In this document: in pieces, positions 35,649 to 56,530 of the stretch | Position numbering within the stretch: position 1 is the first letter of the stretch | Layout of the letters: the number at the start of each line of letters is the position of its first letter | The notes under the pieces: model-generated | Seen by the model: only the letters and a program-made list of their open reading frames with translations | Told to the model about the DNA's origin: nothing | The model's database searches: none | Assembly (NCBI RefSeq): GCF_006345805.1 | Contig: NC_042998.1 | Coordinates: 118,296,001-118,360,000, forward strand | Source of the DNA: Octopus sinensis | Taxonomy: Eukaryota | DNA length: 64,000 nt | Direction of reading: 5' to 3' | Position numbers and translations under genes: made by a program

Positions 35649-35719
<71 letters not shown>

Positions 35720-35727
<8 letters not shown>

Positions 35728-36180
35728 TGAGAATGTGTGTCTGTCTGTCTGTCTGTGTGTTTTCCTAAAACTTGAGAACTACACAACCAATTTCCTTCAA
35801 ACTTTACACATGCCTTACTTAGGATCCGGGGAGTGTCATCGGCAAAACAAATGTTTAACTTTTTAACTTTTTGCCTAGGGCGAGCCCACATCAATATCAT
35901 ATCTTCTCCACTACGATTCCCTAAAACCTGAGAACTGAACAACCAATTTCATTCACATTTTACACATGCCTTACTTAGGATCCATGTAGTTTCATGGGAA
36001 AAAAAGTTCAACTTCTTGCCTAGAGCGAGCCCATAGCAATATCATATCTTCTCCACTATTTCAGTATTACGTGTTAAAAGTGAAACAAAAGCATTTCTCT
36101 ATTTTATGTCAGATACTTTCACTTTAACAATAAAAATAATAATAACAATTGAATTATATTTAGTAAGTAATAATTAAATC
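35720..36180 (+). mobile_element. Helentron/HINE-like element, 5' portion with an internal ~150-bp direct repeat
   Basis: TATAAAACTGAGAATGTGTGTCTGTC head. Repeat units at 35764-35913 and 35920-36058. No 3' terminal hairpin nearby. Confidence 0.55.
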
Positions 36181-36299
36181 AAACTAAAGTATAATATAAT
36201 CGTAACATAAAAAAAATTAAAATAGCAATTGGTATAAAATTGCATCAATGAGTTGAACTTAAATAAGTGGTTTCACATGAATGGAAATAAATAAAAAAT

Positions 36300-36421
36300 A
36301 AAATTAGCGTGCAGAAATGGAATAGTCCTGATGGATAATAAAAAATTAAATTAAAGAAAAGACTATTGTCTATAAAGTATACAATGTAGAGAAAAAAGAA
36401 GATTTGAACAGATGGAGGAAA
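36300..36421 (+). pseudogene. Relic Tx1-like ORF1, left half (interrupted by the array)
   Basis: Reads KEKTIVYKVYNVEKK, then RFEQMEE after a frameshift. Aligns with B ORF1 KKRIIYKTYDTTKKMIQKIEE. Confidence 0.6.
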
Positions 36422-38180
36422 TTTACCCAGTGTGTTGTTATCTGTGATTAGACGTTGAAATTTTGTTGTGTAAAGTGATTAATATCGCGCGAGGCATTTG
36501 CCTCCACGTTTGGAAACCTTCTGAAGAAGGTGAATTGACCCTCTAGTCATGGCGACTTACGCGGGGGTCACGGGAAAGAATAATAATGATTCGGCAATAA
36601 TCGTGAAGGATGTTTTCTTTGAGAAAAGTAAAATCAAAGAATGAAAAGCTATTCAAAAGGGAGGGTGATAGCGTGAAGCTAATCCCCCCCGCGAAAGCAA
36701 AGGAGGACAAGGAAAACAAAACTGTAACGTATAGAACCCAGGACAAAAGTACAAAGAAACTGGCAAGAGTGGAGATAGCAGAGATCGAAAAATGTCTGGG
36801 AGACATAATGGATAAATCGACCTACGTGAGTAGAGGAAAAAAATTTGGTACGGTGGAGGTGAGATGTGCAACGGAAGAAATTGCAGCCTCACTGGCTACC
36901 ACTGTTCTAAGAGCGGAAACATTTATAATGTGGCCCTCATACAAGGGAAGAAGAGGGGTCCGGGTTAAAATCCCGAATATACCCCCAGAAGTAAAAACAG
37001 AATGGCTGGCAACAGCTATTCTAGGAGCAGCAGAAGAGGAAGTGGAGGTGGAATCCTTTAAGGAGTCCAACGCAGTAAATTGGAGAGGATATGGGGTAGA
37101 ACTGTGTTTGATGGCCACAAAAGAGGACATTGAAAGGTTCCCCTATAGAATAGAAATCGAAGACGAGAAAACCCTCAGTGTAATTGTAGAGGGAAGAAAG
37201 CCAAACTGCTACTTGTGCGGGACAAGGGGGCACATTAAAAAAGAGTGCCCGTTATATGAATTCATGGCGGAGTATGAGAAGGAAAATGAAGAAAAAAGAA
37301 TACGGTAAATGAAAAGAAAACATAGAAAAGGAGACAAAACAACAAGAGAAAGGAAATAATAAGTCAACGAAGGAAAGAAATAAAAGAAAAGAAAGAAATA
37401 GAACCAAAACAGAGTCAGGAAAAGAAAAAGGAAAAAGAAACAACAGGAAAAAAACAAGAGAGAGAACAGAACCAAACGAAAAGAAAAGACGGCACACAAA
37501 AAGAAAAAGAAAGGAACATAAAACACGAGAGAAAGAGAGAACAGACAAGAACCAAAAAGACAAGAGAAGGAAGAAGAAAGAAAAGAAGGCAAAAAGAGAG
37601 AAAGAGAGAAACAAAGAGAGGAGAACAAGGAAGAAATAAGCCCGAAAAGAAAAACGAGAGAAAACGTAGGACGGAACAAGATTACTACAAGTTAATAACC
37701 TTCCATTTCAGCCCCGAAATGAAGGAATTGACATGTAGTATGGAGGGACATGTGTGGGTCAACAGGATGACTGATCAGTGGCAGGAGACTGCTCTGATCC
37801 CCAAGAAAGAGTCGCTGAGTTCCTCAGAGCAGCTGGAGAGAGTGTAATTTTTTACACGGTGTTCGAGTGAAAGAGCGGCTGCCTGAGGGCTCAGTGATTG
37901 ACTTTAGAGACTTGAAAAGTATTATGGAATACGTGTGAGATTGTGAGAGGAGAGAGAAAAAGAAGAGAAAAAAGAAAAAAAAAATTGTGAACTATAGGTG
38001 ACGAAAATGTAACCTCTCGATTCCGGGGATCGAGTGGGCATTTGCATCTCATTGTAAATATTCTTTCATTTGTCATTTTATTTTTATTTTTTCCCTTCTT
38101 GTCATTTCGCTTTCTTATTTTAAGTTCCCCGATTGTATTGTCCCCTCTATGTTCGCCCCTTGTGGGTAGTAATAAAATCA
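36422..38180 (+). mobile_element. ORF1-only element, family A'
   Basis: About 125-nt 5' UTR, CCHC ORF1, 3' UTR and shared tail. No ORF2. Confidence 0.85.
36549..37938 (+). CDS. Tx1-type ORF1 (gag-like, CCHC knuckle, K/E-rich linker), frameshifted as assembled
   Basis: Starts ATGGCGACTTAC (MATYAGV). Knuckle CYLCGTRGHIKKEC at 37207-37248. C-terminus ...IMEYV* is homologous to family A. Confidence 0.75.
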
Positions 38181-38191
38181 GATGGAGGAAA

Positions 38192-39866
38192 TTTACCCAA
38201 GTGTGTTGTGAGTTATTTTTGCATGTGAAACTTTGGAAAAAAACTGTTAAAAAAATTGTCAAAAATTGAATCGCGCGAGGCGTTTGCCGCTGCGTGTTTG
38301 AACCTTTTATAGAAGGTGTGTCGACCCTCAAGTCATGGAGACTTACGCGGGTCGCCACAACAAAAGTGACGAGTCACTTAGAATAAACGAAGTGTTCTTT
38401 AGAAAAGAACAATTGAGGAATACGAGAAGTTCGTCAAAAGGGAGGGTGACAGCGTGAAGCTGGTCCCGCCTGTGGAAACAAAGAAGAAAAAAATAACAAG
38501 ACGATAACGTATAGAACGCAAGATAGAAACACTAGAAAAACTGGTGAGAGTGACGATTGAAGAAATAGAGAAATGTCTGGGGGACATCATGAAAAAAGCG
38601 ACTTTTGTAGACAGAGGAAAGAAATATGGTACGGTGGAGGTGAGATGCGCAACAAAGGAATGGCGGCCTCATTGGCTTCCACTGTCCTGAAAGCGGAAAA
38701 TTTCACCATGTGGCCGACATATAAAGGAAGACGAGGGGTACGGGTAAGAGTCCCAAAGGTGCCCCCAAATATTAAAACAGAAATGCTGGTAACAGCCATT
38801 ATTGGGGCAGCAAAAGAGGAAGTAGAAATAGGGTCAATTAAGGAGACGAACGTTAAATTGGAAGGGATTCGGAGTCGAGTTGTGGCTGATGGCCACAATT
38901 GAAGACATCGAAAGATTCCCTTCCAAATAGAAATAGAAAACGAAAAAACAATTAGTGTAATAGTGGAAGGCAGAAACCGAATGCTACTGTGCGGCTCAAG
39001 AGGGCACATAAAAAAGGAATGTCCGCTGTATGAATTCACAGCGGAGCAAAAAGAGACACAAAGTGGAGAGAAGGAAAACGAACACGAAGGAAAGAACAGC
39101 AAAAACAAGGAAAAGGAAATAAAATAACGGAGAAACAACAGAGAAGGGAAGTAACAGCGCACTGAAGGAAAATGAAAACAAAGGGAAGAAGATAGTAGAA
39201 AAGGAGAAAAATTCACAGGGTGCAGAAGTAGAGGAGAAGGAGCCAAGGCAGAAGCAAGAGAAAGAAAAGGAAAGTACATTAAAGGAAAGAGAAAAAGCAG
39301 GAAAAGAACAAGAGAAGGAACAGAACCAAGAGAAAGGAAAAGATGGTATGCAAAAAGGAAAAGAAACAACAGGAAAGGAACTTAAGGCACAGGGTAGAGA
39401 GACGGCAGACAAAGAGCCAAAAAGACAAGAGAAGGAAAAAGAAAGAAGAGAAAGCAAAAAGAGAGAAAGAGAGAAACCGAGGGAGGAGAAAAAAGAGGAA
39501 GTAAGTCCTAAGAGAAAAACTAGAGAAAACGCAGGTACGAATAGAAAATTCAAATACTATGGAACGTTGATCCATCACAAGCACTGTGAGGAGATGGAAA
39601 ATTTAATAAGCGAAACAAACGGATATACGTGGGTCAGGATGGGCACCGAATGGAAAGAAACAGGTGCACTCGTCCACGAGAACGACGCCGAGGCGTTCAT
39701 CGAGGCAGCTGGCGAGAACGTGTTAAAACATATGAAATGCCGACTTCCAAGGTGGCCTCGAACGATGGAAATTTACTCAGATTTGGTAGACATAATGGAG
39801 AGTATATAAAAGAAAAGGTATTGTGAAAACTTTAATTTGGAAATGAAAAAAAAACTTTAAATTCGG

Positions 39867-39898
<32 letters not shown>

Positions 39899-40120
39899 AA
39901 TGTTGAACTTTGTAAACTTTTTGAAATGTATGTTGAAAATGTATAAAATGTTTATTTGAAAAATATTGTTGACGAATGAAAATAATGACGAAATGTAACC
40001 GCTCGATTACGGGGATCGAGTGGGCATTGCACCACATTGTACAAACTTCATAATTCATTATTCATTTTCCCGATTGTATTGTCCCATCTATGTAGCCCCT
40101 AGTGGGTATATAAAAAAACA
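38192..40120 (+). mobile_element. ORF1-only element, family A, copy 1
   Basis: Near-identical to 45352-47290 and 47302-49250. No ORF2. Confidence 0.9.
38335..39809 (+). CDS. Family A ORF1, frameshifted as assembled
   Basis: METYAG start, MWPTYKGRRGVRVRVPKVPP core, zinc knuckle, K/E tract, and C-terminal GYTWVRMGTEW domain. Confidence 0.7.
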
Positions 40121-40346
40121 AGTGGAGGAAATTTTTTGCGTTATTAGTAAGTTGATATATATTTTTGCTCTCGTACTATTATCTCTGTTATTATATACTG
40201 TTGGTCTACCTGTTTTTGTCTATTGTTGTCTAACGGACGAAGTCAGCCTTCGCGCGAAGACTTCGCGTTGGTGTTCCCCCCTCAGTGGGGGAAAACTACA
40301 ATTAATTTGGATTTACCAAAGGCTTGTTATAAGCCATTTGTTCAAG

Positions 40347-41717
40347 ATGGAGTCCCCCATCACTTATTCGCCCGTGACGAGCGAGGATGAATACCCGGCG
40401 TTGTCGCCAAGTAAAAAAGAGGCGTTGTCGCCAAGAAAAAAAGAGGCGCTGTCGCCGAAGAAAAAAGAGGCGGCGTCGCCCAAGAAAATGGAAAAACCAG
40501 TACCAGCATCAACTCCAGCAAAAAAATTCGCTGAAGTGGCTGGGAAAAAGATAAAAAAAATAAATATAGACAATTTTAAAAAATTTGCAGACTGTGTAAA
40601 AAAAGAAGGCACAGAAGTGACTGTGGCCACAAACATACAAATACATGACGATATAGAGAAAAAAAGAATAATATATAAAACTTACGACACAACGAAAAAA
40701 ATGATCCAAAAAATCGAAGAAAAAAAAATAGAGTCTTGTCTAAAACGTTTATGGACAAAATAACGTATATAAACAGAGGAAAAAGATACGGCACAGTGGA
40801 GGTGCATTTACTACGGAGGAGATAGCGAAAAGAAACTATCGATGGAGCAATCAAAGCGGAAAACATGTCTTACTACCATTGTATAAAGAAAAAGGACGTC
40901 GAAAATTTCGATGAACAACATTCCGCCAGAGGCAGATGCTAATGTCTGGTGGCAGCAGTGATGGTAGGTCTGGAGGAAAAAATAAACATCCTCCAGGCCA
41001 CAGTGGAGGAAGAGGATTTTGGAAAGGCCAAAAAATAGTGATAGCCATTCAGGCGGAGGTGCAAACACTGGAAGAAATTCCAGAAACGGTAAAGATTAGT
41101 GAAGACGAGAAAATAACAGTGTTCGTGGAGGGCAGGAAACCGAGGTGCTTCGGCTGCGGCAAGAAGGGGCATGTAAGGGCGGAATGCCAACCCCAACCCA
41201 AACCGCAGGAAGCACCTAAGCCAAAAGAAAAAGAAGACAATGTGTCACCAGAAGCAGCGTCAGACGGCCCAGAAGGGAAGACTGAAGGTGTGGAGGTGAC
41301 GGTGACAGCAGAACCAGCGGCGGAAAAAAAAAAGAGCGAGGAAAAGATAAATGAGGAGGGGTGGGAAAAAATTATCGGAAAAAAAAAAAGAAAAACGGAA
41401 ACCACCCCTCCCAGAGTAATTTTAAAAAAGAAAAAAGAGTCAATGAACTCATATATGGCCGTAAAGGCAGCAAATAGCAGACTCGGAAACGTGTTGGCAG
41501 CCATGGCCAAAGTGGAGAAAGTAGAGAAAAAAAACGACTTTGTAATTTACAGAATAGGCCGGAAGGATTACGGGCGGATAAAGTCAGAATTCTTCCATGA
41601 CGTAGGCCCACTTAGATTGGATGTGACATCTCCACATATATTCGAGGGCCTACGTCAACTCCCCCACGAGGCCCAGAAAAAGAGTTAGAAGAACAAGAGA
41701 GAAAACCGAACCACTGA
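40347..41717 (+). CDS. Family B ORF1, frameshifted as assembled
   Basis: MESPITYSP start, SPxKKEA repeats, RGKRYGTVEV core, knuckle CFGCGKKGHVRAEC. The exact stop (41688 or 41717) depends on unresolved indels. Confidence 0.75.
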
Positions 41718-41730
41718 TATAAGGTAAGTA

Positions 41731-44700
41731 ATGGATTACATTTATGTTGGTTGTTTGAATGTGCGCGGCCTGGGAGCAGACTGGAAGCAAGGTCGCTTCC
41801 TGCATGATATCAGGTCGCGTAATTTAGATGTTATTGTTGCTACAGAAACCCGGTTAGAGGGGCCAAGAGGTCTACTCCCGCTGTTTGACGGCTACGAGAG
41901 TTTTTTCTCTCCTGGCAGTCCTACAGGCGGGAGTGGGGTGTTGGTCCTATTAAAAGAAACCGGGTTCTGAGAAAAAGTTAATTTTTGCAGATCCAGAAGG
42001 TAGGCTGGTCGTCATGGATTTGACGTTCAGTAACGGTAAAGTTATCAGACTGGTTGCAATTTACGCACCCAACCATACAGGGCAAAGTGATTATTTTCGT
42101 GAACTAGAAAACTTCTTGGTACTTCGCATTCATTAGTGGTGCTAGGAGACTTTAACACAATTGCAAAGCGGATGTAGATTATGTTGGCTCGTGTCCAGAT
42201 AGAGAAAAGGCAACAGTGGCTTCATGGAACTGCTAAGCCGCTTTTGAGCTAGCAGATCCTTATAGGCTGGAATTTCCGAACGCTCCATTGTGGACATGGT
42301 CAAACAGCGACGGATCTTCCAGGTCATATTTAGATAGAATACTAATTAGAAAAGTAGACAGTAAAATAGCTAAGTGTCCACAGTTTTTCCCGATCAGCTA
42401 CAGTGATCATAAAATGGTCACTTGTAAGCTTGACATAGATAAGGTTAAAAATAGAGGATCCGGTTACTGGAAACTTAATACGTCCCTTTTGGCGACTAAG
42501 GAGTACAAAGACCGGATTAGGAATATAATTCAGAGGGCACTATCTGGTACCATCATTAATAACAAATGGTGGTACGCCCTCAAACGAGCCATCAAGTTTG
42601 AGTCTATTAGATATAGCATAGGAGTAGTGGCTAGAGAGGCTAGAAGGGAAACTACTCTAGTTAAGGAATTAGAGGAAGCCATGAAAACTGGCTCTGCGGC
42701 TCAGGTGGCGTCCAAGAGACTGGTGTTAAACCAGCACCTCGAGGCCAAACACATGGGCTGCATTGTCAGGGCTAGAATCCGCCATATGGGATGTGAAGGA
42801 ATCAACGCCGTGAGATGGGCCGAGTGGTGGAAGCTCGGCATGGTAACGATGCCACGATTCGATCTTTGACGAACCAACAAGGTGAGTTGATAAACGAACC
42901 CGAGGAGATGTGTGAGGCCTTTCAGGAGCACTTCGCTCAGCTTTTCGGTGAGTGAGTGCGGCGGACTGGATAGGAGGAGGGCCTTTACGGACCTACTCGA
43001 CGGGCTGCCGCGCTTATCGGGGCGAGATGCGGAGGGTTGTGAAGGGCCAATCACGCCTGAGGAGAGGTGGTTGAGGCAATGGCGGACTGCGGCGCGGGCA
43101 AGGCGCCGGGTTTGGATGGTCTACCCTATGAGTTATATAAGAGTATGCCAGACTTGTTCGGGCACCTACTGGCGGAGGTCTATGCGAACTGGCAGCAGAA
43201 CGGGCTTATACCCAGATCTGTGCGCCGGGGAGTAGTGACTCTCGTCAGAAAGGACCCGAGCAAGGGGGAGTGCATTGATAATTTCAGGCCCATCACTCTG
43301 CTAAACACAGAGTTGAAGATTTTGGCCAAGTGTTATCGAAAAGATTGGCGCGTGTCGCGGATGGTCTGATCGGAGAGGCACAGACATGTGCCGTTCCGGG
43401 CAGATCCATTCAGGATAATCTCCATCTAATGCGGTACACTATAGAGGGGTTTAATAGTGATTCTGGCAAGGGTGGGGCACTGGTCCATTTAGACCAATCT
43501 AAAGCTTTTGATAGGGTCGACCATCGTTACCTGGTGTCTGCCCTGGCACAGTTCGGGCTGAGCCTTGGCTTCCTCAGGTGGATTATCCAAATTTATGATA
43601 ACATCGACTCGGTAGTTGGGGGTGAACGGCTTCTTGTCGAAGCCGTTCAAAATCAAACGCTCGGTTCGTCAAGGGTGTCCGCTCTCCCCGCTTTTGTACG
43701 TGATGACTCTTGAGCCATTACTGCGAAAACTGAGCGGCATCCCGAGACAGCCAGGTAATGGAAAATCAGTGTCAGCGTACGCGGATGACATCACCATCAT
43801 CGTAACCGAAATGGACCACCTATGTAAAGTAGGCAAGGCCATAGAGGTTTACGAGACGGTGACAGGAGCAAAAGTTAATCGCGAAAAGTCAGTCGGCTTG
43901 CAACTCGGCACCTGGAGAGGCAAGTCGATGCCTCCTGACAGCGTCGTGGGACGTTGGACGGAGGGTCCGATTAAACTGCTAGGGGTCTGGTTCGGTCCAG
44001 ACCTCCAAATAGAGAAGAATTGGGGCGAGGTAACGAGCAAGGTGGCTGCAGTAGCCAAGACCTGGTCTTGGCGGTGGCTATCCTGAAAGGGAGGGCGGAG
44101 GTGGCCAATGTGTTTATCGCATCGGTTATCACCTACCGCCTTTCCGTCGTTCCTTGCCCTGATTCGTGGTTGATCAAGTTGGAAAGACAGCTCTTCTACT
44201 TCTTGTGGAAGGGCGGGAAACCACTTGTGAAACGCTCTACTTGCTGTCAACAACCGTTAAAGGGTGGGCTAGGGATGCCTTGGCTGATGATGCGCAGACA
44301 TGCGCTGAGGTTAAGACATCTGTGGCTCTACCTGGATGGTGAACGGGTGTGGTCTTCGCTAGCAAAACTGATGTTTCCCAAGTTCACTAGTTTCGGTGGA
44401 TGGGAAACCTGGCTGAATCGTAGATCGAAACTTGGTACTTGGTACACGGAGTGTCGCAAGGCTCTCCTGCTATTCGTCGCTCGGGAATTCTCTATAGAGG
44501 GTTGGTAGAGGCGGAATGTGAAGATACCTTGGGGGAAACCCTAGGTCTCGACGATAATCAGCTGGCCAGTCTGTTCCGACGTACGTTCGAGCGAGGACAC
44601 TGGACAACTTCCAGAAGTCTCTGGCATGGCAATGCTACAGAGGAGCTCTACCTGTTCGGGATAAACTCGCAAGGCACGGTGGCCAAGACAGTCCGATATG

Positions 44701-45100
44701 TCCAAGATGCGGGCGGGATAGGGAAACCGTCCCGCACGCTATTGTTCATTGTCCGGACGTGTCTGAGGTGTGGGTTTATGCCGAACACCTGTTGTCAGGT
44801 ACACGAAGAGTACAGCTGTCGACTGAGTCGATTACAAAAATTGACCCCACGGATTTCCTCGTGAATGAAGGTAAGTTTCGTTTTCTCGTTGTAGTAGCAA
44901 TTGCGAAAGAGGTGATATGGAAGACGAGAATGAAAGGTTTACAGTCAGGCAAGTTCATCTCCGGCCCTGGTTTGATGAATTATTTCATCTTCCACCTGAA
45001 AAGGAAGATAGGGCTGGAGAGAATATGCCTGACTAGGAGAGTGTATGAACAAGGATGGAAGGATGTAGCACGAAAGTTGCGAGTGAAAGATACAACATAA
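41731..45100 (+). pseudogene. Family B ORF2 (AP endonuclease, RT, C-terminal Zn motif), multiple frameshifts
   Basis: Motifs LNVRGL, ATETR, GDFN, SDH, KAPGLDG, DQSKAFDRVDH, RQGCPLSP and YADD. Carries a ~27-bp deletion near 44486 relative to copy 2. Confidence 0.85.
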
Positions 45101-45351
45101 ATGTAATACCAAGCGCAACCAAAAGTATCAGTGGGGAGGCGGGGCTCGTGGGGTCCGAGCTAAACCCGCACCCACTCCACCCGTAATGTCTTCCGGTCTG
45201 TCCCATCATTCGATTTCTGTCCATTTATTGTAATTCATGAAAATTTTTAAATCCGATTTATTGTAAAAACCCATTCGTTTGTCTGACTCAGATTGTATTG
45301 TCCCATCTATGTTCGCCCCTTGTGGGTAATAATAAAATCACATGGAGGAAA

Positions 45352-47290
45352 TTTACCCACGTGTGTTGTGAGTTATTTTTGCATGTGAAACTTTGGAAAA
45401 AAACTGTTAAAAATTGTCAAAAAAATTGAATCGCGCGAGGCGTTTGCCGCTGCGTGTTTGAACCTTTTATAGAAGGTGTGTCGACCCTCAAGTCATGGAG
45501 ACTTACGCGGGGGTCGCCACAACAAAAAGTGACGAGTCACTTAGAATAAAAGCAGTGTTCTTTAGAAAAGAACAATTGAAGGAATACGAGAAGTCGTCGT
45601 CAAAAGGGAGGGTGACAGCGTGAAGCTGGTCCCGCCTGTGGAAACAATAGAAGAAAAAAATAACAAGACGACGATAACGTATAGAACGCAAGATAGAATC
45701 ACGAGAAAACTGGTGAGAGTGACGATTGAAGAAATAGAGAAATGTCTGGGGGACATCATGAAAAAAGCGACTTTTGTAGACAGAGGAGAGAAAGAAAGAA
45801 ATATGGTACGGTGGAGGTGAGATGCGCAACAAAGGAAGTGGCGGCCTCATTGGCTTCCACTGTCCTGAAAGCGGAAAATTTCACCATGTGGCCGACGTAT
45901 AAAGGAAGACGAGGGGTACGGGTAAGAGTCCCAAAGGTGCCCCCAAATATTAAAACAGAAATGCTGGGTAACAGCCATTATTGGGGCAGCAAAAAGAGGA
46001 AGTAGAAATAGGGTCAATTAAGGAGACGAACGTTGTAAATTGGAAGGGATTTGGAGTAGAGTTGTGGCTGATGGCCACAATTGAAGACATCGAAAGATTT
46101 CCCTTCAAAATAGAAATAGAAAACGAAAACACAATTAGTGTAATAGGGAAGGCAGAAAACCGAATTGCTACCTGTGCGGTTCAAGAGGGCACATAAAAAA
46201 GAAATGTCCGCTGTATGAATTCACAGCGGAGCAAAAGAGACACAAGTGGAGAGAAGGAAAACGAACACGAAGGAAAAGAACAGCGAAAACAAGGGAAAGG
46301 AAATAACGGAGAAACAACAAGAGAAGGGAAGTAACAGCGTACTGAAGGAAAATGAAAACAAAAGGGAAGAAGATAGTAGAAAAGGAGCAAAATTCACAGG
46401 GTGCAGAAGTAGAGGAGAAGGAGCCAAGGCAGAAGCAAGAGAAAGAAAAGGAAAGTACATTAAAGGAAAGAGAAAAAGCAGGAAAAAAACAAGAGAAGGA
46501 ACAGAACCAAGAGAAAGGAAAAGATGGTATGCAAAAAGGAAAAGAAACAACAGGAAAGGAACTTAAGGCACAGGGTAGAGAGACGGCAGACAAAGAGCCA
46601 AAAAGACAAGAGAAGGAAAAAGAAAGAAGAGAAAGCAAAAAGAGAGAGAAAGAGAGAAACCGAGGGAGGAGAAAAAAAAGAGGAAGTAAGTCCTAAGAGA
46701 AAAACTAGAGAAAACGCAGGTACGAATAGAAAATTCAAATACTATGGAACGTTGATCCATCACAAGCACTGTGAGGAGATGGAAAATTTAATAAGCGAAA
46801 CAAACGGATATACGTGGGTCAGGATGGGCACCGAATGAAAGAAACAGGTGCACTCGTCCACGAGACCGACGCCGAGGCGTTCATCGAGGCAGCTGGCGAG
46901 AACGTGTTAAAACATATGAAATGCCGACTTCCAAGGTGGCCTCGAACGATGGAAGTTTACTCAGATTTGGTAGACATAATGGAGTATATATAAAGAAAAG
47001 GTATTGTGAAAACTTTAATTTGGAAATGAAAAAGAACTTTAAATTCGGAAAAAAAAAAAAAAAAAGAAATGTGAACTTTGTAAAACTTTTTGAAATGTAT
47101 GTTGAAAATGTATAAAATGTTTTATTTGAAAATATTGTTGACGAATAAAAAATAAATGACGAAATGTAACCGCTCGATTACGGGGATCGAGTGGGCATTG
47201 CACCACATTGTACAAACTTCATAATTCATTATTCATTTTCCCGATTGTATTGTCCCATCTATGTAGCCCCTAGTGGGTAAATAATACAAC
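45352..47290 (+). mobile_element. ORF1-only element, family A, copy 2 (ORF1 about 45495-46993)
   Basis: Near-identical to the other A copies. Confidence 0.9.
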
Positions 47291-47301
47291 ACAGGAGGAA
47301 A

Positions 47302-48994
47302 TTTACCCACGTGTGTTGTGGGAGTTATTTTTTGCATGTGAAACTTTGGAAAAAAACTGTTAAAAAATTGTCAAAAATTGAATCGCGCGAGGCGTTTGCC
47401 GCTGCGTGTTTGAACCTTTTATAGAAGGTGTGTCGAACCTCAAGTCATGGAGACTTACGCGGGGTCGCCACAACAAAAAGTGACGAGTCACTTAGAATAA
47501 AAGAAGTGTCTTTAGAAAAGAACAATTGAAGGAATACGAGAAGTTCGTCAAAAGGGAGGGTGACAGCGTGAAGCTGGTCCCGCCTGTGGAAACAATAGAA
47601 GAAAAAATAACAAGACGATAAACGTATAGAACGCAAGATAGAAACACGAGAAAACTGGTGAGAGTGACGATTGAAGAAATAGAGAAATGTCTGGGGGACA
47701 TCATGAAAAAGCGACTTTGTAGACAGAGGAAAGAAATATGGTACGGTGGAGGTGAGATGCGCAACAAAGGAAGTGGCGGCCTCATTGGCTTCCACTGTCC
47801 TGAAAGCGGAAAATTCACCATGTGGCCGACATATAAAGGAAGACGAGGGGTACGGGTAAGAGTCCCAAAGGTGCCCCCAATATTAAAAACAGAAATGCTG
47901 GTAACAGCCATTATTGGGGCAGCAAAAGAGGAAGTAGAAATAGGGTCAATTAAGGAGACGAACGTTTTGTAAATGGAAGGGATTCGGAGTAGAGTTGTGG
48001 CTGATGGCCACAATGGAAGACATCGAAAGATTTCCCTTCCAAATAGAAATAGAAAACGAAAAAACAATTAGTGTAATAGGGGAAGGCAGAAAACCGAATT
48101 GCTACCTGTGCGGTTCAAGAGGGCACATAAAAAAGGAATGTCCGCTGTATGAATTCACAGCAAAAAAAAAAAGAGACACAAAGTGGAGAGAAGGAAAACA
48201 AACACGAAGAAAGAAAAGAACAGCGAAAACAAGGAAAAGGAAATAACGGAGAAGAACAAACAACAGAGAAGGGAAGTAGTAAAGGCGTACTGAAGGGAAA
48301 ATGAAAAACAAAGGGAAGAAGATAGTAGAAAAGGAGCAAAATTCACAGGGTGCAGAAGTAGAGGAGAAGGAGCCAAGACAGAAGCAAGAGAAAGAAAGGA
48401 AAGTACATTAAAGGAAAGAGAAAAAGCAGGAAAAGAACAAGAGAAGGAACAGAACCAAGAGAAAGGAAAAGATGGTATGCAAAAGGAAAAGAAACAACAG
48501 GAAAGGAACTTAAGGCACAGGGTAGAGAGACGGCAGACAAAGAGCCAAAAAGACAAGAGAAGGAAAAAGAAAGAAGAGAAAGCAAAAAGAGAGAAAGAGA
48601 GAAACCGAGGGAGGAGAAAAAAGAGGAAGTAAGTCCTAAGAGAAAAACTAGAGAAAACGCAGGTACGAATAGAAAATTCAAATACTATGGAACGTTGATC
48701 CATCACAAGCACTGTGAGGAGATGGAAAATTTAATAAGCGAAACAAACGGATATACGTGGGTCAGGATGGGCACCGAATGGAAAGAAACAGGTGCACTCG
48801 TCCACGAGAACGACGCCGAGGCGTTCATCGAGGCAGCTGGCGAGAACGTGTTTAAAAATATGAAATGCCGACTTCCAAGGTGGCCTCGAACGATGGAAAT
48901 TTACTCAGATTTGGTAGACATAATGGAGTATATATAAAAGAAAAGGTATTGTGAAAACTTTAATTTGGAAATGATAAAAGAACTTTAAATTCGG

Positions 48995-49027
<33 letters not shown>

Positions 49028-49250
49028 AATGTTGAACTTTGTAAAACTTTTTGAAATGTATGTTGAAAATGTATAAAATGTTTTATTTGAAAATATTGTT
49101 GACGAATGAAAATAAATGACGAAATGTAACCGCTCGATTACGGGGATCGAGTGGGCATTGCACCACATTGTACAAACTTCATAATTCATTATTCATTTTC
49201 CCGATTGTATTGTCCCATCTATGTAGCCCCTAGTGGGTAATAATAAAACA
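47302..49250 (+). mobile_element. ORF1-only element, family A, copy 3 (ORF1 about 47447-48937)
   Basis: Near-identical to the other A copies. Confidence 0.9.
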
Positions 49251-49481
49251 AGATGGAGGAAATCTATTTTTTGCGTTATTAGTAAGTTGATATATATTTT
49301 TGCTCTCGTACTATTATCTCTGTTATTATATACTGTTGGTCTACCTGTTTTTGTCTATTGTTGTCTAACGGACGAAGTCAGCCTTCGCGCGAAGACTTCG
49401 CGTTGGTGTTCCCCCATCAGTGGGGGAAAACTACAATTAATTTGGATTTACCAAAGGCTTGTTATAAGCCATTTGTTCAAG

Positions 49482-50868
49482 ATGGAGTCCCCCATCACTT
49501 ATTCGCCCGTGACGAGCGAGGATGAATACCCGGCGTTGTCGCCAAGTAAAAAAGAGGCGTTGTCGCCAAGAAAAAAAGAGGCGCTGTCGCCGAAGAAAAA
49601 AGAGGCGGCGTCGCCCAAGAAAATGGAAAAACCAGTACCAGCATCAACTCCAGCAAAAAAATTCGCTGAAGTGGCTGGGAAAAAGATCAAAAAAATAAAT
49701 ATAGACAATTTTAAAAATTTGCAGACTGCGTAAAAAAAGAAGGCACAGAAGTGACTGTGGCCACAAACATACAAATACATGACGATATAGAGAAAAAAAG
49801 AATAATATATAAAAACTAACGACACAACGAAAAAAATGATCCAAAAAATAGAAGAAAAAAAAAATAGAGTCTTGTCTAAAACCGTTTATGGACAAAATAA
49901 CGTATATAAACAGAGGAAAAAGATACGGCACAGTGGAGGTGCGTTTTACTACGGAGGATATAGCGAAGAAGAAAACTATCGATGGAGCCGATCAAAGCGG
50001 AAAACATTGTCTTACTACCATTGTATAAAGGAAAAAAGGACGTCAAAAATTTCAATGAACAACATACCGCCAGAGGCTGATGCTGAATGTCTGGTGGCAG
50101 CAGTGATGGTAGGTCTGGAGGAAAAAATAAACATCCTCCAGGCCACAGTGGAGGAAGAGGATTTTTGGAAAGGCCAAAAAATAGTGATAGCCATTCAGGC
50201 GGAGGTGCAAACACTGGAAGAAATTCCAGAAACGGTAAAGATTAGTGAAGACGAGAAAAATAACAGTGTTCGTGGAGGGCAGGAAACCGAGGTGCTTCGG
50301 CTGCGGCAAGAAGGGGCATGTAAGGGCGGAATGCCAACCCCAACCCAAACCGCAGGAAGCACCTAAGCCAAAAGAAAAAGAAGACAATGTGTCACCAGAA
50401 GCAGCGTCAGACGGCCCAGAAGGGAAGACTGAAGGTGTGGAGGTGACGGTGACAGCAGAACCAGCGGCGGAAAAAAAAAAGAGCGAGGAAAAGATAAATG
50501 AGGAGGGGTGGGAAAAAAATTATCGGGAAAAAAAAAAAAAAAGAAAAAAACGGAAACCACCCCTCCCAGAGTAATTTTAAAAAAGAAAAAAAGAGTCAAT
50601 GAACTCATATATGGCCGTAAAGGCAGCAAATAGCAGACTCGGAAACGTGTTGGCAGCCATGGCCAAAGTGGAGAAAGTAGAGAAAAAAAACGACTTTGTA
50701 ATTTACAGAATAGGCCGGAATGATTACGGGCGGATAAAGTCAGAATTCTTCCATGATGTAGGCCCACTTAGATTGGATGTGACATCTCCACATATATTCG
50801 AGGCCTACGTCAGACCCCCACGAGGCCCAGAAAAAGAGTTAGAAGAACAAGAGAAACCGAACCACTGA
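49482..50868 (+). CDS. Family B ORF1 (copy 2), frameshifted as assembled
   Basis: Same motifs as copy 1. Confidence 0.75.
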
Positions 50869-50881
50869 TATAAGGTAAGTA

Positions 50882-53800
50882 ATGGATTACTTTATGTTGG
50901 TTGTTTGAATGTGCGCGGCCTGGGAGCAGGCTGGAGAAGCAAGGTCGCTTCCTGCATGACATCAGGTCGCGTAATTTAGATGTTATTGTTGCTACAGAAA
51001 CCCGGTTAGAGGGGCCAAGAGGTCTACTCCCGCTGTTTGACGGCTACGAGAGTTTTTTTCTCTCCTGGCAGTCCTACAGGCGGGGAGTGGGGTGTTGGTC
51101 CTATAAAAAGAAACCGGGTTTCTGAGAAAAAGTTAATTTTTGCAGATCCAGAAGGTAGGCTGGTCGTCATGGATTGACGTTCAGTAATGGTAAAGTTATC
51201 AGACTGGTTGCAATTTACGCACCCAACCATACAGGCAAAGTGATTATTTTCGTGAACTAGAAAACTTTCTTGGTACTTCGCATTCATTAGTGGTGCTAGG
51301 AGACTTTAACACAATTTGCAAAGCGGATGTAGATTATGTTGGCTCGTGTCCAGATACAAAAGGCAACAGTGGCTTCATGGAACTGCTAAGCCGCTTTGAG
51401 CTAGCAGATCCTTATAGGCTGGAATTTCCGAACGCTCCATTGTGGACATGGTCAAACAGCGACGGATCTTCCAGGTCATATTTAGATAGAATACTAATTA
51501 GAAAAGTAGACAGTAAAATAGCTAAGTGTCCACAGTTTTACCCGATCAGCTACAGTGATCATAAAATGGTCACTTGTAAGCTTGACATAGATAAGGTTAA
51601 AAATAGAGGATCCGGTTACTGGGAACTTAATACGTCCCTTTTGGCGATTAAGGAGTACAAAGTCCGGATTAGGAATATAATTCAGAGGGCACTATCTGGT
51701 ACCATCATTAATAACAAATGGTGGTACGCCCTCAAACGAGCCATCAAGTTTGAGTCTATTAGATATAGCATAGGAGTAGTGGCTATAGAGGCTAGAAGGG
51801 AAACTACTCTAGTTAAGGAATTAGAGGAAGCCATGAAAACTGGCTCTGCGGCTCAGGTGGCGTCCAAGAGACTGGTGTTAAACCAGCACCTCGAGGCCAA
51901 ACACATGGGCTGCATTGTCAGGGCTAGAATCCGTCATATGGGATGTGAAGGAATCAACGCCGTGAGATGGGCCCGAGTGGTGGAAGCTCAGCGTGGTAAC
52001 GATGCCACGATTCGATCTTTGACGAACCAACAAGGTGAGTTGATAAACGAACCCGAGGAGATGTGTGAGGCCTTTCAGGAGCACTTCGCTCAGCTTTTCG
52101 GTGAGTGCGGCGGACTGGATAGGAGGAGGGCCTTTACGGACCTACTCGACGGGCTGCCGCGCTTATCGGGGCGAGATGCGGAGGGTTGTGAAGGGCCAAT
52201 CACGCCTGAGGAGGTGGTTGAGGCAATGGTGGACTGCGGCGCGGGCAAGGCGCCGGGTTTGGATGGTCTACCCTATGAGTTATATAAGAGTATGCCAGAC
52301 TTGTTCGGGCACCTACTGGCGGAGGTCTATGCGAACTGGCAGCAGAACGGGCTTATACCCAGATCTGTGCGCCGGGGAGTAGTGACTCTCGTCAGAAAGG
52401 ACCCGAGCAAGGGGGAGTGCATTGATAATTTCAGGCCCATCACTCTGCTAAACACAGAGTTGAAGATTTTGGCCAAAGTGTTATCGAAAAGATTGGCGCG
52501 TGTCGCGGATGGTCTGATCGGAGAGGCACAGACATGTGCCGTTCCGGGCAGATCCATTCAGGATAATCTCCATCTAATGCGGTACACTATAGAGGGGTTT
52601 AATAGTGATTCTGGCAAGGGTGGGGCACTGGTCCATTTAGACCAATCTAAAGCTTTTGATAGGGTCGACCATCGTTACCTGGTGTCTGCCCTGGCACAGT
52701 TCGGGCTGAGCCTTGGCTTCCTCAGGTGGATTATCCAAATTTATGATAACATCGACTCGGTAGTTGGGGTGAACGGCTTCTTGTCGAAGCCGTTCAAAAT
52801 CAAACGCTCGGTTCGTCAAGGGTGTCCGCTCTCCCCGCTTTTGTACGTGATGACTCTTGAGCCATTACTGCGAAAACTGAGCGGCATCCCGAGACAGCCA
52901 GGTAATGGAAAATCAGTGTCAGCGTACGCGGATGACATCACCATCATCGTAACCGAAATGGACCACCTATGTAAAGTATGCAAGGCCATAGAGGTTTACG
53001 AGACGGTGACAGGAGCAAAAGTTAATCGCGAAAAGTCAGTCGGCTTGCAACTCGGCACCTGGAGAGGCAAGTCGATGCCTCCTGACAGCGTCGTGGGACG
53101 TTGGACGGAGGGTCCGATTAAACTGCTAGGGGTCTGGTTCGGTCCAGACCTCCAAATAGAGAAGAATTGGGCGAAGGTTGGGGCGAGGTAACGAGCAAGG
53201 TGGCTGCAGTAGCCAAGACCTGGTCTTGGCGGTGGCTATCCCTGAAAGGGAGGGCGGAGGTGGCCAATGTGTTTATCGCATCGGTTATCACCTACCGCCT
53301 TTCCGTCGTTCCTTGCCCTGACTCGTGGTTGATCAAGTGGAAAGACAGCTCTTCTACTTCTTGTGGAAGGGCGGGAAACCACTTGTGAAACGCTCTACTT
53401 GCTGTCAACAACCGTTAAAGGGTGGGCTAGGGATGCCTTGGCTGATGATGCGCAGACATGCGCTGAGGTTAAGACATCTGTGGCTCTACCTGGATGGTGA
53501 ACGGGTGTGGTCTTCGCTAGCAAAACTGATGTTTCCCAAGTTCACTAGTTTCGGTGGATGGGAAACCTGGCTGAATCGTAGATCGAAACTTGGTACTTGG
53601 TACACGGAGTGTCGCAAGGCTCTCCTGCTATTCCGTCGCTCGGGCAACGCCTGCGGTGGGGGTTCCACCACATTCCTCTATAGAGGGTTGGTAGAGGCGG
53701 AATGTGAAGATACCTTGGGGGAAACCCTAGGTCTCGACGATAATCAGCTGGCCAGTCTGTTCCGACGTACGTTCGAGCCGAGGACACTGGACAACTTCCA

Positions 53801-54287
53801 GAAGTCTCTGGCATGGCAATGCTACAGAGGAGCTCTACCTGTTCGGGATAAACTCGCAAGGCACGGTGGCCAAGACAGTCCGATATGTCCAAGATGCGGG
53901 CGGGATAGGGAAACCGTCCCGCACGCTATTGTTCATTGTCCGGACGTGTCTGAGGTGTGGGTTTATGCCGAACAGCTGTTGTCAGATACACGAAGAGTAC
54001 AGCTGTCGACTGAGTCGATTACAAAAATTGACCCACCGGATTTCCTCGTGAATGAAGGTAAGTTTCGTTTTCTCGTTGTAGTAGCAATTGCGAAAGAGGT
54101 GATATGGAAGACGAGAATGAAAGGGGTACAGTCAGGCAAGTTCATCTCCGGCCCTGGTTTGATGAATTATTTCATCTTTCACCTGAAAAGGAAGATAGGG
54201 CTGGAGAGAATATGCCTGACTAGGAGAGTGTATGAAGAACGATGGAAGGATGTAGCACGAAAGTTGCGAGTGAAAGATACAACATAA
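50882..54287 (+). CDS. Family B ORF2 (APE-RT-Zn), disrupted as assembled
   Basis: 633-aa open stretch 51290-53191 runs from GDFN to YADD and KLLGVWF. The 320-aa stretch includes CPRCGRDRETVPHAIVHC. An 11-bp duplication at 53167-53188 shifts the frame. Confidence 0.85.
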
Positions 54288-54528
54288 ATGTAATACCAAG
54301 CGCAAACAAAAGTATCAGTGGGGAGGCGGGGCTCGTGGGGTCCGAGCTAAACCCGCACCCACTCCACCCGTAATGTCTTCCGGTCTGTCCCATCATTCGA
54401 TTTCTGTCCATTTATTGTAATTCATGAAAATTTTTAAATCCGATTTATTGTAAAAACCCATTCGTTTGTCTGACCCAGATTGTATTGTCCCATCTATGTT
54501 CGCCCCTTGTGGGTAATAATAAAATCAC

Positions 54529-54840
54529 ATGGAGGAAAGCACATTCGAAACGTGTCTTGGCGTGACTATGAAAGACATCTAATCAGAGGCGGTAAATTCG
54601 CCACAATAGAAGCAAGGTTCGAGTCAACGGAGCGTGCAAGGGAGCACTCGACTCGAACTTGCAAAGTGGAAATATTTTAGTTATACCTTTATATCTGGGA
54701 CGTAGGACGTTCCAGAAAAAAATTTAAAATGTCCCCTCCCCCAGAAGTAGAGGTAGTCTGGATTGTAGCCACACTTCTATACAAGAGGGAGGACATGATA
54801 CAATTGATCGAAATTACAAGAGACGGGCTAACAATTCCAG
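54529..54840 (+). pseudogene. Relic Tx1-like ORF1, right half
   Basis: MEESTFETCLGVTMK / LIRGGKFATIEARF / PLYLGRR / PPEVEVVWIVATLL is collinear with A' EKCLGDIM / SRGKKFGTVEVRC / PSYKGRR / PPEVKTEWLATAIL. Confidence 0.8.
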
Positions 54841-54968
54841 TCTGTTATATATTTTGCGTATTTTTATCACTAGCGATATGTAACTTTGTATTTTGGATTT
54901 TATGTGTAGATGTATATATATAGATGTACATGTAATATGTACACATATATGTACACATATATACATGC

Positions 54969-55010
54969 ACTAGCACTATGACCCGGCAACGACGGGCCTT
55001 TCATGCTAGT
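54969..55010 (+). other. Helentron/HINE-type 3' terminal hairpin
   Basis: ACTAGCA...CCCGGCAACGACGGG...TGCTAGT. Same motif class as the terminus at 281-310. Confidence 0.6.
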
Positions 55011-55055
55011 ATATACATATATGCGCATTTATGCATACATACATATACGTGTATG

Positions 55056-55100
<45 letters not shown>

Positions 55101-55208
55101 GGCGAGAATCATTCTCTTTTGGTGTCTTATAATTTAACACATCGGTAAAATGTCCATATATATATATATATATACATACACACACAAATATCAAAAATCA
55201 TACACATA

Positions 55209-55790
55209 ATGGCCCTCTCAGACATGCCCTCAGCCACACAGAGAGCCACGATCACAAGTTATGCAGATGATACAAAACTTTCACAGGCAATACAGAACCC
55301 TGAGGACACTAAACGCCTGCAATGTGAGCTGGACAAAATATACAAGTGGGCTGCAAAGAATACCATGCAGTTCAATGCTGATAAGTTTCAAGATTTATGC
55401 TATCAGCATGCAAAACTAAATGCAATACCCAATGAATACACTGGACCCGGAGGAATTGCAATCCCAGAGGCAAAATCAGTACGTGACCTGGGTATTTACA
55501 TGAGTGATGACGCAACCTTTCATGTACATGTTGCTAAATTGACAATGAAATGTAGACGACTGGCCGGATGGATTCTTAGAACCTTTAGAACAAGAGAACA
55601 AGAAACCATGATGGTCCTCTGGAGGACACTTGTCCTAAGCCACTTTGACTATTGCTCTCAGCTATGGTCACCATCCAGTGTCAAGCTGATCACAGAACTT
55701 GAGGCGATCCAACGTAGCTACACGAAGAAGATAGCCTCTGTGCAGCATATAAGCTACTGGGAAAGACTCAAGAGATTAAAACTCTATTCT
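55209..55790 (+). mobile_element. CR1-clade LINE RT C-terminal fragment
   Basis: YADDTKL, QFNADK, RDLGI, DYCSQLWSP and LEAIQR...YWERLKRLKLYS. Confidence 0.85.
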
Positions 55791-56172
55791 AGTGGGCTTT
55801 TCAAATCAAATCAGTTGTGGGGAGTTTGAACCTTTTTATAGTTTCGTAGTAGTGGGTGAGGAGGAAGTGAGACAGAGAGAAAATATGTGTGTATGTGTAT
55901 GTGTGTGTGTGTGTGTATGTATGTGTGTGTGCGTGTGTGTGGTGTGTGTGTGCTCGTTTATATCTGAGAGTGAAGAAGTGTTATTTCCGTTGGTCTGCTG
56001 GACCGCCTGTGGTTTTATAAGAACTTTGGCCGTCCATTTCGATGTCACTGAGTGTGTGTTGTGCGTAGGTTGGCCTGGCAAATGTCATTTGGGGTCACAC
56101 TTTCTATGATCATTCTGTGGAGGTGTGTGTGTGTGTGTCTCAATGTGTCCGTGTGTGTTTTTGTGTGCGTAC

Positions 56173-56203
<31 letters not shown>

Positions 56204-56280
56204 TGTGTGTGTCTGTGTGTTTGGAGAAGGGGAGAGATCAAAAAGAGAAAAGGGAAAATAAAAATAATAATAATAAAAAT

Positions 56281-56468: not shown

Positions 56469-56530
56469 AAAAAAAAATAAAAATAAAAATAAGGGAGGAA
56501 GTGGAGAAGAAAAAATATTTTTGTGTGTTG

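Follow-up and report, generated by a model that had tools for sequence, protein, structure and literature searches.

Tx1-Mar LINEs of crocodilians and their SINEU partners (Kojima 2015, PMC4494074), together with the original Tx1L/Tx1D pair of Xenopus cited there, are among the closest known systems. Target-specific LINE of the L1/Tx1 type, with non-autonomous partners inserted at the same fixed site inside a dispersed transposon. Tandem partner copies are described as 'sandwiching a TSD' and are attributed to sequential insertion. Two preferred sites lie within one host element. The partners are short, non-coding SINEs with snRNA heads. HeT-A, TART, TAHRE and other telomere-specialised Jockey-clade elements of Drosophila (bioRxiv 10.1101/2025.06.09.658640) form head-to-tail arrays that grow at one end and insert at chromosome ends without endonuclease cleavage. 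ORF1-only (gag-only) lineages depend there on ORF2 from co-resident elements and give rise to further ORF1-only lineages. HAL1 'half-L1' elements of mammals are mentioned in PMC5753468. LINE-derived, non-autonomous, retaining ORF1 of the L1 type (coiled coil, RRM, CTD; Pfam Transposase_22) and lacking ORF2, dispersed without site specificity. SIDE elements are internally deleted R2 or R1 parasites in rDNA. Short, non-coding deletion products, sharing the 3' end and the exact target of a site-specific LINE.

The locus described here is an array of six retrotransposon units, A'-A-B-A-A-B, all on the + strand, without spacer, in a window of 64,000 nucleotides of Octopus sinensis (NC_042998.1, positions 118,296,001 to 118,360,000). 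As in the Tx1-Mar/SINEU system, a LINE and its apparent partners share a fixed site in a dispersed repeat. The A-type units, however, are 1.7–1.9 kb in length, carry a selected ORF1 of their own and belong to several old families; arrays reach at least 8 units in a consistent order, and the host repeat has no detected terminal inverted repeats and ends in (TA)n. Functionally similar to HeT-A/TART, but not a member: the RT is closest to L1 ORF2p, arrays lie 12–157 Mb inside chromosomes of 73–226 Mb, within a repeat and not at chromosome ends, insertion uses an endonuclease and makes target-site duplications, and no host function is implied. Distinct from HAL1: the ORF1 is of the CCHC-knuckle type with no Pfam Transposase_22 hit but only zf-CCHC, insertion is site-specific and arrayed, and several deeply diverged families exist. 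Distinct from SIDE elements: the A-type units are coding and are not recent derivatives of the complete element. Literature searches for ORF1-only or ORF2-less LINE partners in molluscs or in the Tx1 clade found no description.

Features of the array and of its host repeat (positions within the 64,000-nucleotide window, all + strand; L-numbers denote other loci, see text)
Position	Feature	Limits with the 5' duplication copy	Description and basis
35664..36408	Left arm of host repeat H		Begins in a (TA)n tract; internal tandem duplication of ~155 bp at 35761-35913 / 35917-36058; homologous (88-95%) to the left flank of the arrays in L001-L004, L006, L011 and L012, DNA further out unique at each locus
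36409..36421	First copy of the target-site duplication		CAGATGGAGGAAA; site 1 of the host repeat; the same 10-13 nt recur at every junction and as the last 13 nt of the array
36422..38178	A' unit, ORF1-only	36412-38185	Youngest A' subfamily; conceptual ORF1 36549-37938; open 232-aa piece with a CCHC knuckle at 36610-37308; 1.3-2.3% diverged from the leftmost A' units of five O. vulgaris arrays
38179..38191	Junction copy of the duplication, A' to A1		
38192..40118	A1 unit, ORF1-only	38186-40122	Conceptual ORF1 38335-39809; internal A-run 39869-39897; 3' UTR hairpin at about 39987-40033; 3' tail 40072-40118
40119..40131	Junction copy of the duplication, A1 to B1		CAAGTGGAGGAAA
40132..45338	B1 unit, full-length L1/Tx1-like LINE	40123-45344	ORF1 (CCHC) 40347 to about 41685; ORF2 (APE, RT, zf-RVT) 41731-45100; 3' tail 45291-45338
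45339..45351	Junction copy of the duplication, B1 to A2		
45352..47289	A2 unit, ORF1-only	45345-47293	ORF1 45495 to about 46993
47290..47301	Junction copy of the duplication, A2 to A3		CACAGGAGGAAA
47302..49248	A3 unit, ORF1-only	47294-49251	ORF1 47447 to about 48937
49249..49262	Junction copy of the duplication, A3 to B2		CAAGATGGAGGAAA
49263..54525	B2 unit, full-length LINE	49252-54538	ORF1 49482 to about 50865; ORF2 about 50886 to 54287; open 665-aa stretch (51194-53188) with the end of APE plus RT; open 321-aa stretch (53322-54284) with zf-RVT
54526..54538	Last copy of the duplication		CACATGGAGGAAA; runs straight into host sequence
54539..54831	Host repeat segment X		Present only in host copies that carry site-1 arrays
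54832..54849	Unoccupied site 2 of the host repeat		CAATTCCAGTCTGTTATA; the sequence duplicated around the A and B' units in L002, L003 and L006
54850..55060	Right arm of the host repeat		Ends in (TA)n

The six units of three families reported in the initial annotation were confirmed by self-BLAST and pattern searches, and its limits of 36412-54538 are exact, running from the first to the last copy of the duplicated target. The 29-nt tail pattern occurs 6 times (0 expected by chance) and ATGGAGGAAA occurs 5 times (0.19 expected); all matches lie at unit boundaries, and nothing similar occurs elsewhere in the 64 kb. The junction motif that had been regarded as one shared motif is composed of two parts, a conserved 3' tail of about 45 nt and a copy of the target-site duplication (CAnATGGAGGAAA). 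The latter derives from a host repeat that had not been recognised. A and A' are 75% identical over 0.8 kb. A and B share only the last ~50 nt. Every unit of the window has 9–14 one- or two-base indels but no nonsense substitution; this looks like assembly indel error, and the broken reading frames of the window are not reliable evidence of decay. A consensus of the three A copies did not restore the reading frame, owing to private indels in each copy. Rfam (gathering threshold) and ARAGORN searches of the whole window found nothing; the target is therefore not a known RNA gene.

B units possess Pfam domains Exo_endo_phos, RVT_1 and zf-RVT, corresponding to an N-terminal APE-type endonuclease followed by RT and a C-terminal zinc finger. 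The closest solved protein is human LINE-1 ORF2p (E 2e-50), ahead of R2. 'Tx1-like' fits the behaviour and architecture of the element and does not rest on an RT phylogeny; none of 409 relatives of B ORF2, nor their cluster members, carried a clade name. A repeat survey of O. vulgaris lists, without sequences, 13 recently active 'L1-Tx1' families (PMC13282606). Intact ORF2s of 1131–1132 aa exist in sister B'' copies. The B copies inside the arrays of this host repeat have 2 or more frameshifts, though at homopolymers; the two shared one-base deletions lie in G5 and A5 runs and are not informative as evidence of a dead B master. The endonuclease domain is conserved between B lineages that use the same site (99.1% aa, dN/dS 0.15). 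It is the fastest-evolving domain between lineages at different junction sequences (dN/dS 0.43–0.55, and 1.55 between the two intact B'' copies), which fits target choice residing in ORF2, absent from A-type elements. An RNA 'address tag' (3' read-through) as the reason for different targets with similar ORF2s is not needed given this divergence, but is not excluded.

A and A' of the window encode only a CCHC knuckle ORF. ORF1 of A-type elements (A, A', A'', A''' and C) comprises an N-terminal domain, a CCHC knuckle, a Lys/Glu-rich stretch and a C-terminal domain. The CCHC knuckle is also found in B ORF1. An AlphaFold2 model of A' ORF1, built on a 15-row alignment, had a mean pLDDT of only 45, too low to show an RRM; the C-terminal ~65 residues alone reached pLDDT 70–80, with a predicted beta-alpha-beta-beta-alpha-beta order. 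Intact ORF1s of 493, 467 and 473 aa exist. A, A' and A'' differ at dS 0.9–1.5 with dN/dS 0.18–0.22. Identity of A to B ORF1 is 34% over 210 aa (BLASTP, E 2e-43). The ~45-nt tail motif, TGTCCCnTCT...CCCTnGTGGGTAnTAAnAAA, is present in A, A', A'', A''', C, B, B', B'' and one SINE-like end. RNAalifold on nine diverse 3' tails gave only a trivial 3-bp stem without covariation, so the tail is a sequence motif and not a demonstrated structure. An upstream hairpin is present in A- and C-type UTRs. The lack of an RT or endonuclease of their own and the 3' end shared with the autonomous element match the features of non-autonomous partners of a 'stringent' LINE (SINE-like dependence through a shared 3' end).

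Eight further arrays (L001-L004, L006, L007, L011 and L012) were found in the same dispersed host repeat of about 1.3 kb, spread over six O. vulgaris chromosomes, at two sites 0.3 kb apart (6 + 3 host copies). All loci were reached through annotated ORF1 proteins, and host copies that are empty, or that hold only A-type or only B units, could have been missed. Two conditions had been set beforehand as capable of overturning the interpretation, namely A copies with an ORF2 and A copies without independent insertions. None of 37 A-type units in 11 loci carries an ORF2; the units are fully accounted for by ORF1 plus UTRs, and tblastn with ORF2 pieces gave no hit inside them. A, A' and further ORF1-only families occur as separate insertions flanked by target-site duplications, at 9 loci of one host repeat on at least 6 O. 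vulgaris chromosomes and at another target. Internal junctions always carry the duplication of the local site, 10–19 nt in length: CAnATGGAGGAAA in the window, L001, L004, L007, L011 and L012, CAATTCCAGTCT in L002, L003 and L006, and AAACGTyAGCACGCCG in L005.

In all nine arrays the A-type units lie 5' of a B, and B is the 3'-most unit. In L011, a filler specific to the B junction (ATGGCTCCAAGCTAT) is duplicated at the host/A' junction; A' therefore inserted after B, at the 5' junction. A' subfamilies form a ladder, and in five arrays on four chromosomes their physical order runs from youngest (next to the host left arm) to oldest (next to B). Leftmost units on different chromosomes are 1–2% apart, but 4–9% from units further right in the same array. 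Host arms are 5–10% diverged between loci, B copies only 0.5–4.4%, and the outer flanks are unique. B therefore entered host copies that had already dispersed. Spread of the host repeat plus B as one composite was rejected on the same divergences, and because the B' founders have different 5' junctions.

The region is best explained, and with good though not full confidence, as a site-specific retrotransposon array. In this view, an autonomous L1/Tx1-like LINE nicks one fixed site in the host repeat and inserts by target-primed reverse transcription, the upstream host sequence and the left copy of the duplication survive each insertion, and the target is thereby regenerated at the 5' junction, where later insertions, mostly of A-type elements, pile up head to tail with the newest furthest from the founder B. 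Separate insertions, a shared nick site and tail, absence of ORF2, purifying selection on ORF1 and the order of units are established by the analysis. Recognition of the shared 3' end of A-type RNAs by the ORF2 protein of B-type elements, their copying in trans, and a need for A-type ORF1 protein in their own propagation are inferred from sequence alone, without experiment or RNA data; indirect support for mobilisation is given by the same nick site, the same tail, co-residence, and parallel splits of the A, A' and B lineages between site 1 and site 2 (about 10% each). The founder is a B in 9 of 9 arrays in this host repeat, which the model does not explain. The B copies of L001 and L007 are only 0.5% apart, no older than the youngest A' units, which fits poorly with B being the oldest unit. 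Junction copies of the duplication vary far more than ordinary repair synthesis would predict, and in L004 and L007 do not change monotonically along the array. The reading of A and A' in the initial annotation as protein-coding partners mobilised in trans by B into the same target is supported, mobilisation itself remaining an inference. The A-type families are old, selected, ORF1-only lineages.

Concatenation in a single event is unlikely, but survives best among the alternatives. ORF2 protein would start on its own B RNA at the nick and jump, at the 5' end of B, to the 3' tail of A-type RNAs, laying down an (A)n-B array at once. This would explain why B is always the 3'-most unit. Template jumping is established for the non-LTR RT of R2, and the unusually variable junctions would be consistent with it. 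A jump would not, however, create copies of the local target duplication at internal junctions or of the B-junction filler in L011 unless the RNAs carried flanking sequence. The same youngest-to-oldest order in five arrays needs successive waves, and the window has B units in the middle of the array.

Amplification at the DNA level, by tandem or segmental duplication (unequal crossing-over) of an old composite whose units never transposed separately, is less likely. Some neighbours are nearly identical and share identical junctions: units 6 and 7 of L001 differ by 0.2%, L009 has three identical internally deleted B'' copies, and in the window A1-B1 and A3-B2 align as one 7.3-kb block. The A parts of that block differ by 3.3% but the B parts by 0.9%, and its origin as a segmental duplication was rejected for this reason. 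Units at the same rank on different chromosomes are closer to each other than to neighbours in their own array, and in the present tree the units of each array do not always form a clade. Arrays differ in composition, the B' founders in L002, L003 and L006 have different 5' ends and different duplication lengths, and host arms are older than the inserts.

Origin of A-type units as recent internally deleted, non-coding copies of B with a decaying ORF1 remnant, in the manner of SIDE derivatives of R2, is very unlikely. Tail and target are shared with B, and an internally deleted B'' does exist (L009), but ORF1 is only distantly similar to that of B, the 3' UTRs are unrelated apart from the last ~50 nt, and at least five ORF1-only families exist, with the divergence, low dN/dS and intact ORFs given above. 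A domesticated host gene family in tandem, suggested by purifying selection and by annotation as LOC118764671-like proteins, is the least likely reading, since every copy is bounded by a LINE 3' tail and a target-site duplication inside the same repeat at many loci, subfamilies succeed one another like LINE lineages, and most copies carry frameshifts.

A more far-reaching reading is not excluded, but is doubtful on present evidence. Loss of ORF2 with long-term survival of protein-coding ORF1-only lineages may be a predictable outcome whenever a LINE regenerates its own target and builds head-to-tail arrays. The octopus system would then be an independent, non-telomeric replay of the HeT-A/TART arrangement, and the arrays would act as a dated layer record of subfamily succession. 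The invariable position of ORF1-only units just upstream of an ORF2-bearing unit would reflect a functional coupling, for example read-through co-transcripts giving A-type RNA cis-like access to ORF2 protein, and not mere history.

The A-type ORF1s are currently annotated as ordinary octopus genes. The arrays offer a natural ordered record for dating LINE subfamily turnover, and the pairs of near-identical ORF2s with divergent endonucleases at different junction sequences are a ready-made system for studying how APE-type endonucleases change specificity. ORF1-only LINE partners are well documented only at Drosophila telomeres and, in a different form, as mammalian HAL1; repeated ORF2 loss has been remarked in telomeric elements but not in their non-telomeric relatives (bioRxiv 10.1101/2025.06.09.658640). 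A second, unrelated system would separate two explanations. Here the clade is L1/Tx1-like, the host is a mollusc, and the target is internal and endonuclease-dependent, yet the combination of arrays, several selected ORF1-only lineages and a shared 3' end is the same. This suggests that array-forming site specificity itself, and not telomere biology, favours this kind of parasitism or partnership.

Six units on the + strand, A', A1, B1, A2, A3 and B2, with no spacer, as shown by self-comparison of window 34000-57000. The initial annotation had described this array, and its description and coordinates are correct. The 29-nt pattern GATTGTATTGTCCCnTCTATGTnnCCCCT occurs six times, against none expected by chance, and ATGGAGGAAA occurs five times, against 0.19 expected. 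All these matches lie at unit boundaries. Nothing related occurs in the other 46 kb of the window. B carries Exo_endo_phos, RVT_1 and zf-RVT domains. A and A' give only a CCHC zinc knuckle. The closest solved relative of B ORF2 is human LINE-1 ORF2p (E 2e-50), well ahead of R2 proteins. Other features of the window, and features of the fetched loci, are listed with the units below.

Coordinates of the array units, their surroundings and features noted in the fetched loci
Sequence	Coordinates	Strand	Feature
Window	35664-36408 and 54539-55060		Dispersed repeat of about 1.3 kb in which the array sits
Window	36409, 38179, 40119, 45339, 47290, 49249, 54526		Junctions carrying copies of the target-site duplication
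Window	36412-38185	+	A' unit
Window	38186-40122	+	A1 unit
Window	39987-40033		3' UTR hairpin with a G-rich loop, also in the A', A2 and A3 UTRs
Window	40123-45344	+	B1 unit
Window	45345-47293	+	A2 unit
Window	47294-49251	+	A3 unit
Window	49252-54538	+	B2 unit
Window	54832-54849		Site 2 of the host repeat, present once and unoccupied
Window	55149-55826	+	Fragment of an unrelated reverse transcriptase (weak RVT_1 hit), just beyond the host repeat
Window	56221-56524		A-rich minisatellite with 8-13-nt periods
Window	56531-56851		320-bp near-perfect (98%) palindrome, following the minisatellite
L004	5530-5600		SINE-like element ending in the shared 3' tail motif
L005	12306-12600		Third target, in a SINE-like repeat
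L009 (O. sinensis)	6110-9508		Intact B'' ORF2, 1132 aa
L009	9760-21353		Three identical B'' copies with the same 1.67-kb internal deletion
L010 (O. vulgaris)	6061-9456		Intact B'' ORF2, 1131 aa

All six units look frameshifted. A1-A3 were aligned to an intact A ORF1, and B1 and B2 to an intact ORF2. Each carries 9-14 private indels, mostly of one or two bases, and none carries a nonsense substitution. Copies of the same families in O. vulgaris have 0-4 frameshifting indels. The two indels shared between copies lie in G5 and A5 runs. The window probably comes from an assembly with many indel errors, and its broken frames should not be read as decay.

The A' ORF1 matches only proteins of Octopus vulgaris GCA_951406725.2. 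B ORF1 also matches O. sinensis GCA_006345805.1. The ORF1s of these elements (proteins P0001-P0009 and P0199-P0203) are annotated in O. vulgaris and O. sinensis as ordinary 'uncharacterized protein LOC...' genes. Some are fused by gene models to unrelated exons (P0008, P0009; one is named EPM2A-interacting 1-like). Twelve loci around these proteins (L001-L012) were fetched; they were found through annotated ORF1 proteins, so the sample is small and biased. Eight of them (L001-L004, L006, L007, L011 and L012; six chromosomes) hold arrays of the same families, each embedded in the same repeat of about 1.3 kb as in the window. Left arm of the repeat 0.5-0.75 kb, right arm 0.2-0.5 kb, ending in (TA)n on both sides. 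In the window, an internal tandem duplication of ~155 bp is present and no terminal inverted repeats were seen. No empty copy was among those sampled. The DNA beyond the repeat is unique at each locus.

Two insertion sites are used. Site 1 (window, L001, L004, L007, L011, L012) is duplicated as CAnATGGAGGAAA. Site 2 (L002, L003, L006) lies 0.3 kb further along the host repeat and is duplicated as CAATTCCAGTCT, extended to 18-19 nt around B'. Internal junctions of each array carry the duplication of the local site, not a constant element sequence. A third target, AAACGTyAGCACGCCG, is used by two further ORF1-only families in L005. The 'shared junction motif' of the initial annotation is therefore two things, the conserved 3' tail of each element followed by a copy of the target-site duplication. 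Copies of the duplication (window, L001, L004, L007, L011, L012) are specific to each array and far more variable than the ~1%-diverged units they separate, with up to ~40% of positions changed. L001 and L012, 51 Mb apart on one chromosome, share the variant CGTGTC(G/T)GAAATCTATGC.

The units are separate insertions, not one duplicated block. Host arms differ by 5-10% between loci, while B copies differ by 0.5-4.4%; B therefore entered host copies that had already dispersed. The three site-2 founders (B') have different 5' ends and different duplication lengths. In the window, the A parts of the apparent 7.3-kb A-B repeat differ by 3.3% and the B parts by 0.9%. In L011, the filler at the 5' junction of B (ATGGCTCCAAGCTAT, in place of the usual ATGGAGGAAATCAAT) is repeated at the host/A' junction; A' therefore arrived after B, at the 5' junction, with a duplication of at least 15 nt. 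Some local DNA duplication also occurs. L001 units 6 and 7 differ by 0.2%. The three internally deleted B'' copies of L009 are repeated with a 3.57-kb period behind one full-length copy, which is either local tandem duplication or repeated copying of a deleted element.

An ORF2-bearing B is the 3'-most unit in all nine arrays in this host repeat, and every ORF1-only unit lies 5' of a B. The B-to-host junction is visible in six arrays; in L001, L006 and L012 the locus ends or B is truncated. The A' units form a ladder of subfamilies, at distances from the youngest type of about 2.5, 4.5, 5.5 and 8.7%, with the site-2 A' at 10.4%. In L001, L004, L007 and L012 the youngest type lies next to the left host arm and the older types lie towards B. 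L011 has a single old-type unit. Leftmost units on different chromosomes are 1-2% apart. The A' of the window is 1.3-2.3% from the youngest O. vulgaris copies. The simplest reading is that new insertions go to the 5' junction, the only junction where the host's upstream sequence and the duplicated target remain together. Three observations do not fit neatly: the founder is always B, the B copies of L001 and L007 are only 0.5% apart, and the junction copies are far more variable than the units they separate.

Thirty-seven A-type units were examined. All are 1.7-1.9 kb in length, and none contains any ORF2 sequence. Intact ORF1s are present: A 493 aa, A' 467 aa, A'' 473 aa. Pairwise dS among them is 0.9-1.5 with dN/dS of 0.18-0.22; the three families separated long ago and kept coding under selection. 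A fourth family (A''') and a fifth (C, about 35% identical to both A and B ORF1) were found in L005, and a C-like unit in L008. A ORF1 is 34% identical to B ORF1 over the 210 residues that end at the CCHC knuckle. The C-terminal halves and the UTRs are unrelated, apart from the last ~50 nt. Not recent deletion derivatives of B.

B-type elements occur as several lineages: B (alpha, beta, gamma), B', B'' and B'''. ORF2s are 92-99% identical, but ORF1 and the 5' UTR are much more divergent, with ORF1 61% identical between B and B''. B-only arrays with other junction sequences are also formed (L008-L010). Compared with window B, the elements of L008, L009 and L010 are modular: ORF2 is 92-95% identical, ORF1 only 61% identical and the 5' UTRs are unrelated, which suggests recombination or module exchange between lineages. 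Domain by domain, the endonuclease is the fastest-evolving part between lineages at different sites or junction sequences, with dN/dS of 0.43-0.55, against 0.10-0.24 for RT. Between the two intact B'' copies, which lie in arrays with different junction sequences, dN/dS of the endonuclease is 1.55 (92.8% aa identity), while RT is 99% identical. Between B alpha and B beta, which share site 1, the endonuclease is 99.1% identical with dN/dS of 0.15. This is what is expected if ORF2 sets the target. Both A and A' have site-1 and site-2 sublineages about 10% apart, paralleling B and B'.

All families end in TGTCCCnTCT...CCCTnGTGGGTAnTAAnAAA. The motif is also found on a SINE-like end at L004:5576, and the third target also lies in a SINE-like repeat; the B-type machinery may therefore also move ordinary SINEs. 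No covarying structure was found in the tail. About 85 nt upstream of the tail, A-type UTRs have a stable, conserved hairpin with a G-rich loop (z -3.7), with one compensatory pair and several wobble changes among six sequences. C-type UTRs have a hairpin with a similar G-rich (GGGG) loop but a different stem (z -6). The corresponding B hairpin is not significant (z -1). A recognition hairpin is therefore suggested, not shown.

The nearest precedent is Tx1-Mar with its SINEU partners in crocodilians, where a LINE and its SINE share a site inside a Mariner element, and tandem SINE copies 'sandwiching a TSD' are explained by sequential insertion (PMC4494074). The partners in the octopus arrays differ in being coding, selected and old. 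In function the system resembles HeT-A/TART. ORF1-only lineages depending on the ORF2 of others are reported as widespread across Drosophila telomeres, and as absent from non-telomeric Jockey elements (bioRxiv 10.1101/2025.06.09.658640). The octopus system differs in clade, location and mechanism. A 2026 repeat survey of O. vulgaris lists 13 recently active L1-Tx1 families but does not mention arrays or ORF1-only partners (PMC13282606), and no description was found in other literature searches.

Of the alternative explanations, one-step concatenation by template jumping survives best but is unlikely. Pure DNA-level amplification is somewhat less likely still. Origin of the A-type units as recent deletion derivatives is very doubtful, and a domesticated gene family is the least likely.

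The interpretation offered in the initial annotation, that A and A' are protein-coding non-autonomous partners mobilised in trans by the ORF2 of B, is supported. The separate insertions, the absence of ORF2 from the A-type units and the selection on their ORF1 are read from the sequences, whereas copying in trans is inferred from sequence alone. In the model considered most likely, and held with fair confidence, a site-specific L1/Tx1-like LINE regenerates its target at each insertion, and ORF1-only elements that share its 3' end and its nick site would be copied by its ORF2 protein in trans and accumulate at the 5' junction.
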